Shown one piece after another: positions 22,850-62,979 of a stretch of DNA of 64,000 nt. Position numbers and translations under genes: made by a program. The stretch spans positions 1,674,001 through 1,738,000 of the forward strand of contig NEEC01000016.1 of assembly GCA_002189035.1 (NCBI GenBank), read 5' to 3'. Under the pieces are notes generated by a model, which did no database searches, was not told the DNA's origin, and saw nothing but the letters and a program-made list of their open reading frames with translations. Every line of letters begins with the position of its first letter. Position 1 is the first letter of the stretch. The stretch comes from Utricularia gibba. Its lineage: Eukaryota > Plantae > Magnoliophyta.

Positions 22850-24720
22850 ATTACTCATGCCCACGATGCCGATATTATGTGGAGAGTCGGGGGAGAGCCT
22901 CTCCCCCCCCCCCCCCACTCCCCCTCTTTAACCTATCGATTATGATTGCTTACTTTGAAAGTGGTCTCCGATTCACCATTCATCCTCTAATAGTCTGCTT
23001 CCTTCACAGCTTTAGTATTCCGCTCTATTGCCTTGCCCCAAATTCGATTTTCTGCTTCACCACTTTCATCTTCTATTTAGCTAGCATGGAGCCGATAATG
23101 TCCTTAGCCGATTTTTTCCAACTTTTTAAGATTGTGGTGTGTAGGGCAAAGCCACTGATGCTTGATCATGCTCACTTCCAGTTCCGTTAATTTGAGGATA
23201 ACCCCGACTTGATACTTAATGCTCCTTATACCCACCATGATTGGTGGTCGTCTTTCATCTGAGTGGCACCTCCTTTGGGTTCTAAGTGGAATTTCCCCAT
23301 CATTCCTCCTAACCCCTTCAAAATAAAGCTCTTTAGTTCCTATTGACCCTCTACTGAATCCCATAGAGCCATGTTCCAAAGAATCTGTGAAGGGAATGTT
23401 CGTTACGAGTCTCATGCCTTGATGCTTACGGGGCAATCCTTGATAATTTTGGGCATTCTTGGTTTCGTGATAGCCAATTGCATCGATTTCATTCTGATTA
23501 ATGAGGCTGATTTTACTCTTTTTTCTTCGTCCCACTCTCGTTTGGAGCCTCTCATTCAAAGCCTTCTGTCCCATGATTCGGCTTCCCACCCCAATGTTCA
23601 TCTTCCAGCTCTCAACAAAAAGAAAACGGTTAAGACCTATGCTAAAAAACCCTTCAAGAAGTAAAGAGGTAGTTAGGTTCCTCTTTGTCGAGTTCTACTG
23701 CTTTGCTAGTCTAACCATCCTCTTGTTTCGGTGTGCAGTTGATGAAATCGCAAGAAGTTGGGCTCTGGAGACTTCAGTTGCTGCTCGCTTTATTGCAGAA
23801 ATGCATGAGGCTCTTGAATCGAACGTGCATCCCAATTCGGAGGTTAGTCTTCCTCCTAGTTTGCTTTACATTTTTAGATTCTGCTTTTACCATTATCAGC
23901 TTATTTTAGGCTTGTTCACAAGGCTTCACGTCCGACAATGCCGACTACCTCCTAGAGGGCGATAGGAAGGATGAAACTCCAAGAAATCTGGATCCGATTC
24001 CTGAGGCCGCCGTGGGGAAGGGGAAGGAATAGATATTGTCTTCCCTCGAAGTCGTTGAAGTACCTGACCCGATAATGGTCTTCAACTCGGTGGGGCCATC
24101 CACATCTCAGCCTATTGCTAGGGCACTTAGAGACTCCTCCTTCATTTCAATGCACATTCTTGCCGAGTTGAGGGAGGCTTTGGATGAGGTCATATTAAGG
24201 TCTGCTAGGATTTAGGCAGAATCAGCACTCTGTGGTATATGAGAGGTAATGTTCTTAGGTTTACCTAATTCCAAAGTATGCTTGATATCTTCATATGGGT
24301 GTCACTACTGTTTTAGGGCCTAACTCTCGGTTGAGGCCTCATTTAGGAGGTCGAACTTCTTAAGGTTAGGACTTCAGAGCTTGAGGCCATTATATTGATG
24401 AAGGATTCCAAAATTGATGCCCTTCAAGATGAGTAAGCGGACTTGGCACGAAGCAGAGTTGAAGAAGGGGCTTAGCGAAATGGGCAAGGCAATCGAAAAT
24501 GCTCTCTCTTAGAGGGGGAAGGTTTTAAAGTCAAGATTGAAGAGTTTGAGCCAGAGCTAACGCACACCAAAGGCCGTATCTTTGCACTGGAGGCCGAGCT
24601 ATGCAGTCACGAGTCATCTCAGCAGAGAAATTTGGACGACTTTGTTAGCTCAACCTATTTCTTGGAGCTATTCGACATTTACGCAGGCTATTTGATCGGC
24701 TTACTCCAATATCGGCAATT
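22850..24720 (+). pseudogene. Antisense extra ORF of the Tat element (Transposase_28/PF04195-like N-terminal domain), degenerate
   Basis: YFESGLRFTIHPLIVCFLHSFSIPLYCLAPNSIFCF...HHDWWSSFI*V, located between integrase and the 3' LTR on the opposite strand, as is known for Tat elements. Confidence 0.7.
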
Positions 24721-40622: not shown

Positions 40623-42142
40623 TCACAGGCTCCAGCCCTGTCTGAGACCGTATGCATGTGCGTACCCAGGGTCGTCGTAATGACCATCAGTGCCGTACTC
40701 TAGGCGCTCTCCCACCGTTGAGGACTTGTGCTCATGGGAATCCATAACCGGCCTCGGTGATTTTGGTAGGGATGAAGCAAACTTGGAGATGTGTTGCGCT
40801 AGCTCTTGAGAATTATGCTCCTGTACAGAGCCATTTAAGAAAAACAAAATTTAGGAACTGAGCAATGAGAATCAGTGTTTTATGCACATATATGTAACTT
40901 GCTACTCACCTGGACCCATCGCCCACCGGAATGCATTGAAAGTGAAGCCTGAGGGAGGGTAGAGGTAATTTGTTGGCAGTCGGAACTCCATTTATCCGAC
41001 CACTGCCCAGAACAAATCACATGAACTGGCAGGCCTTTTATCTCATCTCGATCACTCCATTCAGACAAATCAAAACTAGCGTTAAGGCTCTTTCTCATAC
41101 TGAAAACTGCGGCTCCCCAATCGCTGCCCTTTAAAAGGACCCTATGAGCATCTGCCTCCGATTTACTCACTGAATTCATACAGCATGATGCAAGTACCCG
41201 TTGGAACAGCACCGTAAATTCCATAGAAAACTCCCTCACCACAGGTATTTGAAATAGGGTAAGGGGAAAAGCTGTCGCACTTGGCACACTGTCTAAAAGA
41301 AACAAACTTCTGATGGATCCACGGCTTTCTAAGATCCAATTTGCTGTCATTGCCAATGCTGAATCATGCAACACTAAATCCACAGGTCCTAGACCCAAAG
41401 CATCAACTACTTGCCCCAAAATGTTGCCCATTTCTTCACCTCCCAAATCGATGGGCTTAATGCTCTCTTTCTTCTGAGGCTGCTCCTTAATTTCCTCAAA
41501 ATTCACATATCCTTGTTCCACAAGCTGATCGAATCCCCAAAATAATCCCTTAGTCTTGATATCCTCAATGACCCCCCACAATCTCCTCAAAGGGCTACTG
41601 TATCCCCCACTTTCCTCAACCACAACATAAGATCTATCAGAAAATCCGGAACCGGGTAAATCAACAGCCACGACGTGAACATTCATTTGAGCAAGGTATT
41701 TAACAATGTCACGGAAAGAGAAGGAACTGCAGCCCATACCATGTATAATCAGGACGCGGCTTTCCGAGTCGTAAGGGCCTTGCTGGAGACAAAAGATCCC
41801 AACTTCCTGTTGACTTTGGGCCATATGGACCTTGATCGTGCGGCCATTTGAGTAGTGATCTCGCACTTCATCGGGAAGATTAAGGAACCATGTCTTGGGG
41901 TCTCGCGGTGTGATGACACGGAGGAGTACGGCGGCAAATGTGATAAAGAAAACGATGAGAGCGAGGTAGAACCACCAACGAAACGCTCTCGCCGTGGCCG
42001 GTCCCGGTTTGCTTGTAGACTCCGATTCAATTCTCGATTCCGGGTTACTCTCGTCATGAAGCGGCGTCGAGCACTCTGAGCTCTCTCTCCCAGCAGCCAT
42101 GACACTGGAATGGCAGAGAGTGGAAAACTCCGACCACGCCAA
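40623..42142 (-). CDS. AXR4: AUXIN RESPONSE 4-like ER membrane alpha/beta-hydrolase-fold protein, 476 aa; exons 42142-40910 and 40820-40623
   Basis: Single TM segment (WWFYLALIVFFITFAAVLL), motifs HGMGCSSFSFR, DLPGSGFSD, GLFWGFDQLVEQG, HSGGRW and the C-terminal HAYGLRQGW characteristic of AXR4; GT-AG phase-0 intron. Confidence 0.9.
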
Positions 42143-56417: not shown

Positions 56418-57035
56418 GACAGCTTCCGGCACACAGTTTTCATTAAAAACAACCAGTAGATTCGACACAAAGATTAGGCCTAGGGAGTAGCGGCAGCAGC
56501 AGTAAAAAATAGATGAAATTCACCTGATCCAAATGCTGAATCCAAAGACGAACGCTTTTCAACTTCTTTACATCATCCTAATCCCAAATCCAGGAGGCAC
56601 TTCTTTTCCCATCCATTCCGCCATGTTTCCGGTTCCGATTTCTTCTACAAAGCAGTGCCGTACGCTAAAGTTCATTGAATCTAGAGGTGGGCACGGATCC
56701 GACTCGGCCGATCACGCGTCGGACCCATCGAGTTGAAAATGAAATCTCTGATCCGTCCCAAGTCACGGGTTACACGGGTCAATAATTTTTTTTTAATTTA
56801 ATAATATTAGACATATTCATTGAAATCCTCGTCATCCTAATGAAAACACATACTTTTCACAGTGAAAACACACACTGCAATTCGCCGCTCGACACACTGC
56901 AAAGCAATTTCACCATTTTGTACATCGTCGCAAAAATTGCCCGAAAAGCTTGAAGGCGCACGTTGGCAAGGAGCTGGAGAAAAGGTTTGTGAGGTGGTAG
57001 TTGAGATTTTGAAGGTTCAACACACGTCGGAGACG

Positions 57036-58818
57036 ATGCGCACATCAGATAAATTGTGGTTGCGGTTCATAATGCCCGACAACTTCTTCCTATGGGATAA
57101 GGAGGATGAGGAGACCATCGATGGTGACCTTCCACTGCGGGTTGGACCATTGGGGTTTGCGGTTAGTACGGAACACTTTCGATGTGGCCTAAGATTGCCC
57201 ATTGAGCCATTTTTAGCTGAATTATTGAATTGTCTAGAAGTTCTCTTGTCTCATTTAACTCCTCGTTCGGTCGCATATGTTTTATCATTTATGAGCATGT
57301 GTGTCGAAGAACACCTTGTACCTGCTCTTCCAGTGTTTTTCGCAGTTAGCATATGTAAGAAAAATTGGAGAACCAATCACTTCTCACTGAAAGGAAAGCC
57401 AGGTATAACATTGGTAGAAGATGTGCATAGTGGGTATAATGATTGGTGGACCAGTTTCGTGTGGGTGTCCTCTTCGGAAGAATTAGATTTTCCCACACGA
57501 CTTGAGGCTACTTCTACTGTTGGGAAGGCAAAGGGTATGGCTTTTTTTGCGTATCACAAGTAAAACACTCATTCCAAATTTATTTTACTCACTTAATACA
57601 TTTATTGTAGGGTTTGAGAGGATACCCCAAGAAGGAGTAGATGCGCTCCTTGATATTTTCGGTAACAAGAGTAGATCTTTGAATGATATATTGCCACCAT
57701 ATGTCAATGCCATAGGGACTCGTCACTTTTGGTGTGGTCAAATTAGGGTATCTCGTAAATGCCCACAAGTGCATGTTGAGGAAGTTGATGAGGAGGCTGT
57801 AGGAGAGTCTAGTAATAGCACTCAAGTCCATCACGAGAGTCAGCAGATAGATATTAGTCATCTACTAGAAAAAAATAGATCACTTCGTGAAAAATTGGAG
57901 TGGTATGAGAGTCGATGGATATATGGTGGCCCTTCAACCGCTGTTGTGGAACCTCCTAGGAAGTTAATTGTGTTAGATGTGAATGGTGTGTTGGCTGATA
58001 TTGTGTTTCGAGGTCGCTCTCAAAGACCGCCACGGAAGCCTTATACAGTCATCTATGGTAGATATGGTAAGGTGAATGTAATTACTTCAGTGCTTGTACA
58101 CTATATGACTCTGATGTAATGCTTTGTGTTTCTAGTTTTTATAGTTTTCCTATGACCTCATGCCTGACAGTTCATTGAGTGGTGTATGGAGCACTTTGAC
58201 ATGCGGATATGGTCATCACGGGGCGTATAATGTTGACATCACAAAGTTTTTTGATATGGGTGACTCATGTTAAAACTCTATTATAGGGCACAACTTCATG
58301 AGATAGTGAAGTGGGTCTTTGGCTCTACGGAAGCCAACAGTTTGGCTTTTGTATGGGATGCCTCAAAAACGAGTGAAACAGATGTGCGTGCTCATGACAA
58401 TCGTGCGAAGAATGTGATGCTAAAAGAGTTGGAGCACTTATGGCATCCAGATGTAGGATTTGAAGGAAAGTACCATAGTAACAACACACCTCTTATTGAT
58501 GACTCACCATTCAAGTCAATTAGGAATCCAGTAAGTGATTGTAATTCTCTAAGCATTATATGTTACACTCTTGTGTTAACATACTTACTAGTTGCAACTT
58601 GTGATGTTCAACAGCGTGATAATGCCATCTTTCCTATACCGTACACCCATAAGAATACGGAGGAAACTGCCTTGGCTAAAAGAGGTGAGATACGAGACTT
58701 CTTGAAGGGGCTGTTGGTGACCTCAAGTGTGCCAACTTTCGTGAATGAGCATCGTGTAGGACAAGCCCCATTGGATTCTGACCATCCACTATGGGATCAC
58801 TACAAGTCACTTGCTTGA
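57036..58818 (+). pseudogene. Cargo gene: Transposase_28-like domain fused to an FCP1/NIF HAD phosphatase-like domain; exons about 57036-57534, 57611-58066, 58145-about 58226, 58287-58530, 58615-58818
   Basis: GLRLPIEPFLAELL..LTPRSVAYVLSF..DWWTSFVWV, then LIVLDVNGVLADIV, VFL*PHA*QFIEWCMEHFDMRIWSSR, FVWD, LKELEHLW, NTPLIDDSPFKSIRNP, AIFP, GQAPLDSDHPLWDHY. Three of four introns are phase-consistent GT-AG. TGA stops at 58153 and 58165. The start may lie further upstream (ORF open from 56862). Confidence 0.82.
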
Positions 58819-58999
58819 TATGGTATGAAACATAGCATATGTTGAGAGAAGATACACCAGCCACACTTATTTCTAAATTTCAAGACCATGCTTGTGGTGT
58901 GTTTTCCATTGGAACATTGATTTTGTTTTACAGAATATTCGTAATGCAATTCTACCTCTTTATGTTTATGATGCTCGTAATCATTGAACCCTCTTCATG

Positions 59000-59600
59000 T
59001 CCAGGCACTACAATGAAGTGTTTGCGGTGCCTGGTGAATATTGAAGCCTCTGTCTTCCAGGCACCGCAGAGGCATGTTCACTGTGCCTGGACAACACTGA
59101 GGCCTCTAGATGTCCAGGCACCACAATGGCATGTTTGCAGTGCCTGGACAATATTGAAGCCAATGTCTACGAAGCACCACAAAGGCATGTGTTACGGTGC
59201 CTGGAGAATATCGAAGGTAGTGCCTTCCAGGCACCGCAATGGCATGTTTGCGGTGCGTGGACAATATTGAAGCCAGTGTCTATGAGGCACCGCAATGACA
59301 TGTTTGCGATGCTCCGACAATATTGAAGCCAGTGTCTATCAGGCACCACAATGGCAGGTTTGGGGTGCTTCGACAATACTGAAGCCATTGTCTATCAGGC
59401 ACTGCAATGGCATGTTTGCGGTGCCTGGACAATATTCAAGCCAGTGTCTATCAGGCACTGCAATGGCATGTTTGCGGTGCCTGGACATGAAGAGGCTTCA
59501 ATGTATTCCAGGCACCGCAGGGATGTGATTGCGGTGCCTGGAAGGCATTGAAGCCTCAATATTGTCCAGGCACCGCAAACATGCTATTGCGGTGCCTGGA
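59000..59600. repeat. Tandem array of 11 palindromic units, 56-bp period, consensus CCAGGCACCGCAA-TGGCATGT-TTGCGGTGCCTGG plus a constant linker
   Basis: Units start near 59001, 59057, 59114, 59170, 59227, 59283, 59339, 59395, 59451, 59508, 59566; the last unit and its linker are inverted. Confidence 0.92.
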
Positions 59601-59788
59601 AGAGATACTCAAGTGTTTTTATGCTTGTGCACTGCCAGAAAAATTTCACATGACATTACAAGTTTCCCCTCCACCTTATTTTAGGCTTGGGACTGACTGT
59701 GTCCAAATGTGGACACTGGCGGAGTTAAAAACTTGTGTTTCGGTTAGTACACGTATGAAATAGCAAATGAATAAATAATATGGTAAGG

Positions 59789-61817
59789 TCACTCATTCTT
59801 AGAGGTGGAACTCCCTTCACCACCATCATCATCGTCCATGTTGTCTTCAACAAAGGCTTGCATCCTCTGCTCTACAACTATCCAATCCTTTAAACAAACA
59901 CATGCTTCAAGAGTGGCCCCGGTCAAGCTTGACCTTCTAGGAGTGAGAATCCTACCACTCAAGCTGAAGGCGCTCTCTGATGCCACGGTAGATGCTGGGG
60001 TGCCAAAACATCTCTAGCCACCTGTGCCAATGTAGGATACACTGCAACTTGTGATTTCCACCAATTCAAGACGTCAAAGTTATCACCCTTAGCTTGGAAC
60101 TGGTGGGTTGCATTGTATAATGCCATCTCGCTGGCCTTGGTGATCATGCTAGGAGATGCCGAAATCATGGAGTAATAATCATCTGCAGAAGAGGAGATAC
60201 CTCTATGCAACTCCTCACTCCCAACCCGCGTATTGGACGCTTCACGCTCATATAAGTCATGCAAATAGGTTAAGGCATCTAAAGCAGAGGTATACATTTT
60301 TTTTTGCATCCGGCTTAATATTAGGAAGTCCAAGAGATGTAAAATAATCACAAAACAAATTTAAACCAGTTTGCAAATCGGCTGCCTTCACCCTGGGATC
60401 AAGCATGTTTGCAACCAGAAATAATGTAGGTATAGTCTCAAAATATTTCATGAATTTATGAACCATAAATTTTACAATATCAGAGACCAATTCCACTTTG
60501 AAATATTTTTTAAATGTAGAGACTATGGCAACAAGGGTAGACAACACAACATGTGTGGTAGGATAGTAAACACCACTAAATAACCTAGTGTATTTATGAA
60601 AAATCGAAAGCAAGTCAACCAATATGTGAAACTTAGCATACACATCATCATCAATCACAATATGTAGATCGGTATGCGTAGATAAAAACAATGAAACAAC
60701 TTCTCTATAAGGAATAAAAGATTGAAGCATGAAAAACGTAGAATTCTAGCGTGTGGGCAAATATGTTTTTAGAGTTCAGAATGGTAGACCCTTTAACTCA
60801 CATAGACGCTTGAACGATGCCCTTTTTGTACTAAACATCTTCACATGATAAACTATCCTACGAACACTAGCCAAAGCAGCCTCAATATTATTTTCATTTA
60901 GTGCATCTTGTACACATAAATTCAAAATATGGCAAATGCATCTTGACCTAAAGAAACACCCACCTAAAACGGGATTCATAGATGATTTCAACATGGATGT
61001 TGCAGTAGTGCTATTGGAGCCATTATCAAGATTTATATTAAATACACGATCAATAATTGAATACTCAATACATATGGAAGTAACAAGTTCGGCAATTTGT
61101 GCTCCTTTGTGTGGAGAATCCAAAGGTCTAAAACCAAGAATTCTGTTTTGTATAAACCAATTGCAATCAATCCAATGAGTAGTTACAACTAAATAATTCT
61201 CACCATTAATACCATGCCAACCATCACAAGTTAAACCAAATTTGCATTTCATAGATTGAAAATCAGAGATCAAACGAGATTTTTTTTTTTCAAATTGTTT
61301 AAATGCAATTTGAACAGCTTTTCTCCTAGACATGGGAGCAAATCTAGGTTGCAATATAGATTGATAAAAATATCTAAAAAATGGATTCTCTACCTCTACA
61401 AAGGGCTTTTCACTCGCAATCAATGTAAGTACATAATCAATTTGAGCAGCATCAAGATCAAATGAAAAGGTTGAAACATGTCCATGCATAACATTTAAAG
61501 TAGGTTGTCTCAATGAAATATGTGCCTTGTCTATATGCTTATTTCTAATGTGGCTAATGAAATTAGAAGTTGAAATGTTCATGCCACTTGTCGTGATTGA
61601 AATATGTGCCCTTACCATGGTCATACACCATTCCACAATACTTACAACATACCTTTTTGGCCTCCTTGTCGTGATTGAAATGTTCATGCCACTTGATGCA
61701 TGAAGCATCTCGTTTTTTTGAGGTAAAGGAGATATCTTCCCCATCACCTGACAATTCAATATCACACTCGGGATGTTGCTCGTGTGAAGGTGTCACACTT
61801 TGATGTGATTCTTCCAT
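59789..61817 (-). pseudogene. hAT transposase (BED zinc finger, DDE core, dimerisation domain), frameshifted
   Basis: WHEHF..CKYC..TSNFISHIRNKH; LTCDGW, YLVVTTHWID, RCICHILNLCVQD; MLDPRVK; WWKSQVAVYPTLAQVARDVLA; ASESAFSLSGRILTPRRSSL..LEACVCLKDW. Split over several frames. Confidence 0.92.
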
Positions 61818-62979
61818 ATTTGATTACCTGAAGGCTGAAACACAATCAAGAGAAATAAATCAATTTCAAACTTTATATACACAACTCTAAGCCGTAGATA
61901 CACACGGTTCCATTTTTCTTTGGATAGTCGCGCACATACCTTTTCGAAGGTCTCCAGACACCGCAAAGCGGGTGGGTTTTACGGATTCAGCTCCAATTGT
62001 TGTCCGAAAACCTTCCAAAATTCAGAATTCGGCTTCTAAATGCACAATGAACAGTACAAGCCTTTGAATATTTTCGTGTCTTCAAGCGAGAGAGGCACAA
62101 CTCATTTGATAATTAGGTTATGGGCTGGCCATGTATTTATATTCTTGTGAGTCAGCCCAACACTTCTTAACACACTACATGCCAGGCCCATTTACACTGA
62201 CCCGCCGAGTCGACTCGTACCCGTAGACCACCGACCCATCCCGTACCCGTTTTTGACGGTTACGGGTGGTTGGACCCGTCACGGGTTGACCCGCCGGATA
62301 CACGGGTCAACCCGTAACCGTGCCCAGCTCTAATCGAATCTCACAGAATATAGAATAATTAAAGACAAATTTGAGCTCCAAGAACAAGGAGACAACTGAT
62401 ATGGGCTGGGCCTCTTCAATTTCGCCCCGACCCCGATCAACTGTTTTCTAACGGCTTTTAATTTTTGTAAATTGGTTTAGATTGGGGCCACATTACAAAT
62501 TCTAATGACGGATTTACATAAATTTGTATTTTTAAATTTAAATATATATAAATAAATATATATATATATATAACAATTGGCTTGTGCTTGTAATAGATTT
62601 ATCTCTTAAATCCACGTCTTTCATTTTCAAGCTCTTGATTGAGTTTAGCATATAGACTTTAAATCACTATTTTTTTATATCATAAGTTTGTTGGATGATA
62701 ACCTTGACTCAGATAAGAACTACTAGGCAGTTACTATGGATAAGATTAGGAAGTTGTTATAGTTACTAAAAGTTATTAAGATAAATATCTCAATCATGTG
62801 CACATTAATACAATGACCAAAACCTATAGTAATTTCTACATTCCTTTTCCTTGTTCTTTGGAGCATTTTCTCGAATACATGTTGTGCAAAATCAGTAGCC
62901 TTTGATCCCCAGCCTGTATGTTTCTTCATTGACCAAAACCTACCGTACAAGCATACTTGATGTGATTAAGAATACACAA

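Follow-up and report, generated by a model that had tools for sequence, protein, structure and literature searches.

A spliced TRP28-HAD-like second gene in a multi-copy hAT transposon family of Utricularia gibba

A 64,000-nucleotide stretch of the Utricularia gibba genome (assembly GCA_002189035.1, contig NEEC01000016.1, positions 1,674,001 to 1,738,000 of the forward strand), here called the window and numbered from its first letter, was found to contain a hAT transposon with two convergent genes (Table 1). One is the transposase (gene 1). The other (gene 2) is a spliced gene in which a transposon-derived domain, TRP28, is joined to a region resembling the NIF/FCP1 group of HAD phosphatases. 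The left terminal inverted repeat (TIR) of the element, TAGAGGTGGGCACGG (56682-56696, + strand), agrees with the reverse complement of the right TIR, TAGAGCTGGGCACGG (62318-62332, - strand), at 14 of 15 nt, and the 8-bp target site duplication (TSD) reads ATTGAATC (56674-56681) on the left and ATCGAATC (62333-62340) on the right, with seven of eight positions in common. A preliminary description of the locus had called the TIRs and TSD intact; both are present, with the word being slightly generous in view of these mismatches. The element thus shows the features by which hAT transposons are recognised, namely an 8-bp TSD, short TIRs and a transposase with an RNase-H-like insertion region and a C-terminal dimerisation domain. 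It should also be noted that the terminal 300 bp at both ends hold nine of the 18 occurrences of ACGGGT/ACCCGT in the window, the usual picture for what would be transposase-binding repeats.

Table 1. Features of the hAT element and its two genes, in window coordinates.
Feature	Coordinates	Strand	Remarks
hAT element	56682-62332		TIRs, TSD, transposase domains
Possible leader exon, or region where gene 2 transcription starts	56702-56751	+	X6 contig record 16
Gene 2 exon 1	57036-57534	+	ATG at 57036; TRP28/Transposase_28, Pfam match to residues 44-102
Intron 1	57535-57610	+	GT-AG, 76 nt; phase-consistent; missing from X6 record 18
Gene 2 exon 2	57611-58066	+	Acidic/coiled linker, then start of HAD-like domain (motif I, LDVNGVL)
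Intron 2	58067-58135	+	GT-AG, 69 nt
Gene 2 exon 3	58136-58222	+	HAD motif II region (IWSS); in-frame TGA at 58153-55 and 58165-67
Intron 3	58223-58286	+	GC-AG, 64 nt; leaves exon 4 1 nt out of frame
Gene 2 exon 4	58287-58530	+	HAD motif III (K) and motif IV (IDDSPFK); conserved frame from 58288
Intron 4	58531-58614	+	GT-AG, 84 nt
Gene 2 exon 5, coding part	58615-58818	+	Stop at 58816-18; transcript contig continues to 58950 (3' untranslated region)
Palindromic array	58982-59606	.	About 11 units of 56 bp; last two inverted
hAT transposase pseudogene	59789-61817	-	Four open reading frame pieces; Pfam PF14372 and PF05699

Gene 2 lies convergent to the transposase and has five exons and four introns, all at exactly the places given for them in the preliminary description. 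The introns are richer in A+T (65-72%) than the exons (56%). For intron 3, three placements are compatible with the junction seen in a transcript-like contig (see below), and GC-AG is the sole known splice-site type among them. When the exons are read in their own frames only two stops are met in 494 codons, compared to 30 and 51 when the two remaining frames are used, and 2000 shuffles gave a mean of 30 stops and a minimum of 14. With two stops against about 30 expected, gene 2 was therefore real coding sequence until recently. In this copy it is inactivated, both by the two stops in exon 3 and by a 1-nt frame break at the junction of exons 3 and 4, where each exon is in good frame on its own and the two are nevertheless spliced out of phase; what had first been noted as an unresolved splice phase is thus a real break. 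Each TGA arose by a transition at a cytosine in a CG or CHG context. Of the earlier proposal that the two stops arose from CGA codons, the presence of both TGA triplets stands, while the second of them reads CGG (C at 58165 and G at 58167) in most other copies by depth and in the transcript contig.

Support for splicing came from sequencing run X6, which was taken to be RNA by guess. A 1260-nt contig of this run (record 18) aligns with 49 mismatches (about 96% identity) to 57398-57533, 57610-58065, 58135-58221, 58286-58530 and 58615-58950, with all four predicted introns exactly absent; among these is the phase-consistent intron 1, by which the preliminary description had joined the two halves of the gene. 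A second X6 contig (57132-57426) spans the core of the TRP28 domain and overlaps record 18 within the same continuous exon, and the splicing of the gene agrees with the prediction. X6 depth is found over gene 2 only, with none over the repeat array or the transposase, while the DNA runs cover all 30 bins into which the element was divided, a distribution compatible with gene 2 RNA derived from a sister copy. A further X6 contig (record 16) covers 56702-56751, continues with 40 unplaced letters and then covers 57063-57161. This hints at a leader exon and an intron in the 5' untranslated region, with a start just inside the left TIR, with no placement of the splice sites being possible. A bacterial promoter and terminator scan of the left end, a type of scan irrelevant to a plant, returned nothing.

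The first exon of gene 2 was matched to PF04195 with an E value of 3e-8 and 34.2 bits, above the gathering cut-off of 26.2, over profile positions 3-62 of 69. Clusters of PF04195 were also its look-alikes by protein language model (0.97), and the domain is therefore the one named in the preliminary description. Transposase_28 is called TRP28 by Vicient (Mob DNA 2025, PMC11963269), and DNA binding is predicted for it, with no similarity known outside transposons (PMC11963269). A separate 103-aa open reading frame (ORF) elsewhere in the window (22879-23187, + strand) gave 19.9 bits to PF04195, below the cut-off, and matched exon 1 over 38 residues by BLASTP (E 2e-4); it probably represents the remains of a TRP28 gene that belonged to a different element.

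From the end of exon 2 onwards, the translation contains a series of motifs which we take, from knowledge of HAD enzymes, to be in the NIF/FCP1 order, and they are at canonical spacing: L-D-V-N-G-V (motif I); R-P, F-I-E-W and I-W-S-S (motif II); the lysine of M-L-K-E-L in the segment MLKELEHLW (motif III); and I-D-D-S-P-F-K (motif IV), followed by N-A-I-F-P-I. DVNGVL, DDSPFKS and HPLWDHY, on which the domain had initially been recognised, are all present. Motif I has the form DxN instead of DxDx(T/V), meaning that the nucleophile aspartate is kept and the second aspartate, the general acid/base, is replaced by asparagine, as had also been noticed at the outset. Among language-model look-alikes of exons 4-5, NIF families, including a TIM50 cluster, accounted for 99 of 100 (0.93, with 196 shared features). 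The last 57 residues of exon 2, which do not overlap with exons 4-5, gave NIF as top look-alikes (0.88), followed by HAD phosphatases of the PNK3P and MDP-1 types. As evidence for a HAD/NIF fold such look-alikes are a lead only. Because of the motif order and these look-alikes, the C-terminal part of gene 2 is likely to be a NIF-like HAD domain, and probably a weak or inactive enzyme. Single-sequence AF2 models, built with no alignment, had a pLDDT of 37 for exons 4-5 and for exon 1 and were too poor for a fold search. A metagenome scan with peptide patterns of exons 4-5 returned no match. Four low-complexity repeat proteins with unrelated Pfam domains, returned by phmmer for exon 2 among 1.84 billion representatives, and a coronavirus nsp9 match in the PDB (E 0.35) were rejected as chance.

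The element belongs to a multi-copy family. Contigs from two independent DNA studies (937 from run X5 and 201 from run X1) match all 30 element bins at 85-99% identity. At the positions listed, 40 of about 1270 variant positions, 9-17 distinct contig variants were counted in the exons of gene 2 and 6-13 in the transposase, and the summed depth of gene 2 in the DNA runs is similar to that of the transposase. About half of the differences are C>T or G>A, as expected for methylated repeats. Among the contig joints listed (15 of 79, with X6 joints not among them), 57203>58371, 59049>60732 and 60220>61939 represent internal-deletion derivatives, which are typical of DNA transposons. As both genes are covered by multiple variants in two DNA studies, this copy did not acquire the gene by a one-off capture of its own, in agreement with the preliminary description, and the presence of a family-wide, spliced, chimeric second gene in this hAT family is well supported.

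The transposase was identified by Pfam matches of its ORF pieces to hAT-like_RNase-H (PF14372, 31.8 bits) and, on two pieces that hold its two halves, to Dimer_Tnp_hAT (PF05699, 30.7 and 33.5 bits), all above cut-off. Read in all three frames, it has a BED-like CxxC...HxxxxH start, a CDGW motif and the RWNST hallmark, and in this copy it is inactivated by at least five lesions. The hallmark reads R-stop-NST due to a Trp-to-stop change at 60746-48; there is a duplication of 33-36 nt at 61575-61610, a stop after GLPF, a frameshift near 60260-60350 and another at about 59996. Other copies have C at 60747, giving the Trp codon of RWNST, the duplication is not found in them, and some contigs have an extra G after 59996; several of the lesions are thus confined either to this copy or to a minority of the family. 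The 329-aa transposase ORF had no PDB match by phmmer. Run X15, the second one for which RNA is a guess, has a 154-nt contig on 61556-61740, in the 5' part of the transposase, which is a perfect match except that it does not have the private 33-nt duplication. This contig may come from a transcript of the transposase of a sister copy, or from carried-over DNA.

Between the 3' end of the transcript (about 58950) and the stop of the transposase (59789), that is, between the 3' ends of the convergent genes, lies an array of 56-bp units, each of which contains a palindrome with arms of 12-14 bp (GGCAC-N18-GTGCC). Seven exact dyads were counted against 0.2 expected, and none occur elsewhere in the window. 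The predicted hairpins of the array range from -12 to -18.5 kcal/mol (z -3.2 to -6.4). The array may offer binding sites to a dimeric DNA-binding protein, or it may keep the convergent transcripts apart as a barrier. A metagenome scan with the 21-nt core of the unit returned no match. At a distance from the element, a 420-aa ORF at 40880-42142 (- strand) with an alpha/beta-hydrolase fold (PF00561, 28.1 bits) appears to be a gene of the host, or a piece of one, with no relation to the hAT element.

The insertion is read here, with moderate confidence, as a dead copy of a multi-copy hAT family whose members carry two convergent genes, the second being an accessory gene and not passive cargo. Gene 2 is likely to be a transposon accessory gene. 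Its transcription would run from the left end towards the interior of the element and give a product with TRP28 at the N-terminus, an acidic linker and a NIF/FCP1-like HAD domain at the C-terminus. TRP28 would bring this protein to DNA, possibly to the element's own array of 56-bp palindromes. The DxN HAD domain would be slow or inactive as a phosphatase and would bind a phosphoprotein, with the C-terminal domain (CTD) of RNA polymerase II (Pol II) or a small-RNA/silencing factor as candidate partners. The expected effect would be that the element's own expression is favoured; an anti-silencing or transcription role for gene 2 is a conjecture.

A number of results weigh against an intact, functional accessory gene. 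The identity of the transcript contig rests on the guess that X6 is RNA, and a processed retrocopy, the sole alternative source, would look identical. The exon 3 and exon 4 pieces of the contig are gapless (87 and 245 nt) and of the same lengths as in this copy, so that the frame break is common to both: the expressed sister copy would also terminate seven codons into exon 4, and the mRNA as placed cannot encode the full fusion. This tempers the idea that the subfamily currently makes the full protein, and no open full-length frame of gene 2 was seen among the copies examined. The complete NIF-type domain of the preliminary description was not recovered as a profile match, with PF03031 (NIF) giving none up to E 10 for single exon pieces and stop-free ORFs alike, and phmmer with single-exon queries gave nothing meaningful in the PDB. 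Exon 2 had no sequence relatives among the 1.84 billion representatives searched by phmmer. Word-index protein searches with the 183-aa ORF of exons 4-5, the 233-aa ORF of exon 1 and the exon 4 region returned neither relatives nor a self-match, blanks that are weak since a fusion of some 490 aa falls outside the length window and transposon genes are frequently masked. Finally, capture by an ancestor followed by hitch-hiking amplification would equally place gene 2 in many copies.

In that last scenario a chimeric gene or fragment was captured once by the family ancestor from another transposon and amplified passively, with no contribution to transposition. We regard this as doubtful but as a possibility to be taken seriously. 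A transposase alone normally suffices for hAT elements, and as this copy and the transcribed sister copy are both frame-broken at the exon 3/4 junction, the gene was already defective when at least one subfamily multiplied or was transcribed. On the other hand, the reading frame was kept until recently, introns and promoter context are all retained with correct splicing, and the depth of gene 2 is close to that of the transposase in the DNA runs. As regards Pack-type capture (transduplication), no host parent gene or protein relative was found by phmmer or word-index search, and TRP28 is not known from host genes (PMC11963269).

It is very unlikely that the working protein simply ends at the exon 3/4 junction, with TRP28, the linker and no more than the initial third of the HAD domain, and with exons 4-5 as a relic 3' untranslated region. 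The transcript contig does have CGG at the second exon 3 stop and the early termination in exon 4 described above. However, its base calls settle only the second TGA (58165-67) and not the first, a third of a HAD fold, with its Rossmann-like core, cannot fold alone, and exons 4-5 are stop-free over 148 codons and NIF-like. An origin of gene 2 from a different transposon or fragment nested in this one hAT copy, and so outside the structure of the family, would be in line with the occurrence of TRP28 genes in other element types, including the weak TRP28-like ORF at 22879-23187, but it is given almost no credence: 56900-58950 is not bracketed by a second TIR pair, long terminal repeats or a TSD, the two genes are alike in summed depth and in number of variants among the family DNA contigs, and X6 record 16 starts at 56702, within the left subterminal region of the hAT element.

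For a likely accessory gene of a hAT family, parallels exist among the non-transposase genes of other transposons. Such genes decide how transposons deal with host control, and few are understood in plants, VANC being the main worked example. New here are transcript-level support for the four introns, the multi-copy evidence and a frame break common to the expressed copy. hAT elements normally require the transposase alone and are classically single-gene, and the occurrence in such a family of a transcribed TRP28 domain that is spliced to a CTD-phosphatase-like one connects elements of class I with those of class II through one module. It also offers a biochemical handle, in that a predicted DNA-targeting domain and a predicted phosphoprotein-binding domain occur together with a candidate cognate repeat. 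In the literature that could be searched no paper was found with the combination of PF04195 and PF03031 or with a phosphatase-like gene in hAT elements, as the preliminary description had supposed, and an atlas of Arabidopsis transposon products has no mention of phosphatase, NIF or hAT.

Second genes elsewhere include TnpA of CACTA elements and the ULP1-protease genes of MULEs and CACTAs. The Myb-like ORF1 of PIF/Harbinger is likewise the second gene of a plant DNA transposon (PMC2528002). Gene 2 resembles all of these as a family-wide gene beside the transposase and differs from them in domain content. With the NIF/FCP1/SCP group of HAD phosphatases (PF03031; plant CPL/SSP, TIM50) gene 2 has in common the order and spacing of motifs I-IV and of the motif I-II segment, and its nearest look-alikes are NIF; it differs in the DxN of motif I, in giving no single-exon Pfam or PDB match to this group, and in being fused to a transposon domain inside a transposon. 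MAIL3, in which a plant mobile domain is fused to a PP7-like phosphatase, similarly combines a transposon-derived domain with a phosphatase-type domain. However, MAIL3 is a domesticated host gene with a domain of the PPP family, whereas gene 2 is still within a transposon and is of HAD type.

The TRP28 ORFs of Retand/Tat Ty3-gypsy elements, found as antisense ORFs in 97% of recently active Retand clusters (PMC11963269), have the same Pfam domain, are encoded by transposons beside the core enzymes and adjoin tandem-repeat arrays. Previous descriptions of TRP28 are limited to these antisense ORFs, for which there is no explanation as yet. In contrast, the gene described here is a spliced multi-exon gene with a HAD-like fusion in a class II hAT element, while that study mentions neither phosphatase nor hAT and reports no phosphatase domain and no DNA transposon (PMC11963269). 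It could be imagined that TRP28-HAD is a portable trans-acting accessory module, swapped between plant retrotransposons and DNA-transposon superfamilies, which would recognise element-specific palindromic arrays and, through its DxN domain, trap a host factor in its phosphorylated state, either the Pol II CTD or a silencing/small-RNA component, such that the element stays transcribed. This is a speculative proposal, to which we give a low probability.

The VANC genes of the Arabidopsis VANDAL (MULE) elements (Hosaka 2017, PMC5735166; Sasaki 2023, PMC10398659) are similar to gene 2 in being non-transposase genes of a DNA transposon family that has short motifs arrayed in its non-coding DNA. They differ in having neither TRP28 nor a HAD domain, and in the present case it is the co-occurrence of a gene and a private palindromic array that was seen. 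Binding of the gene 2 protein to the 56-bp palindromes with loss of methylation, in the manner of VANC, is pure conjecture. If the portable module were real, it would represent a second anti-silencing system beside VANC, and a mechanistically different one.

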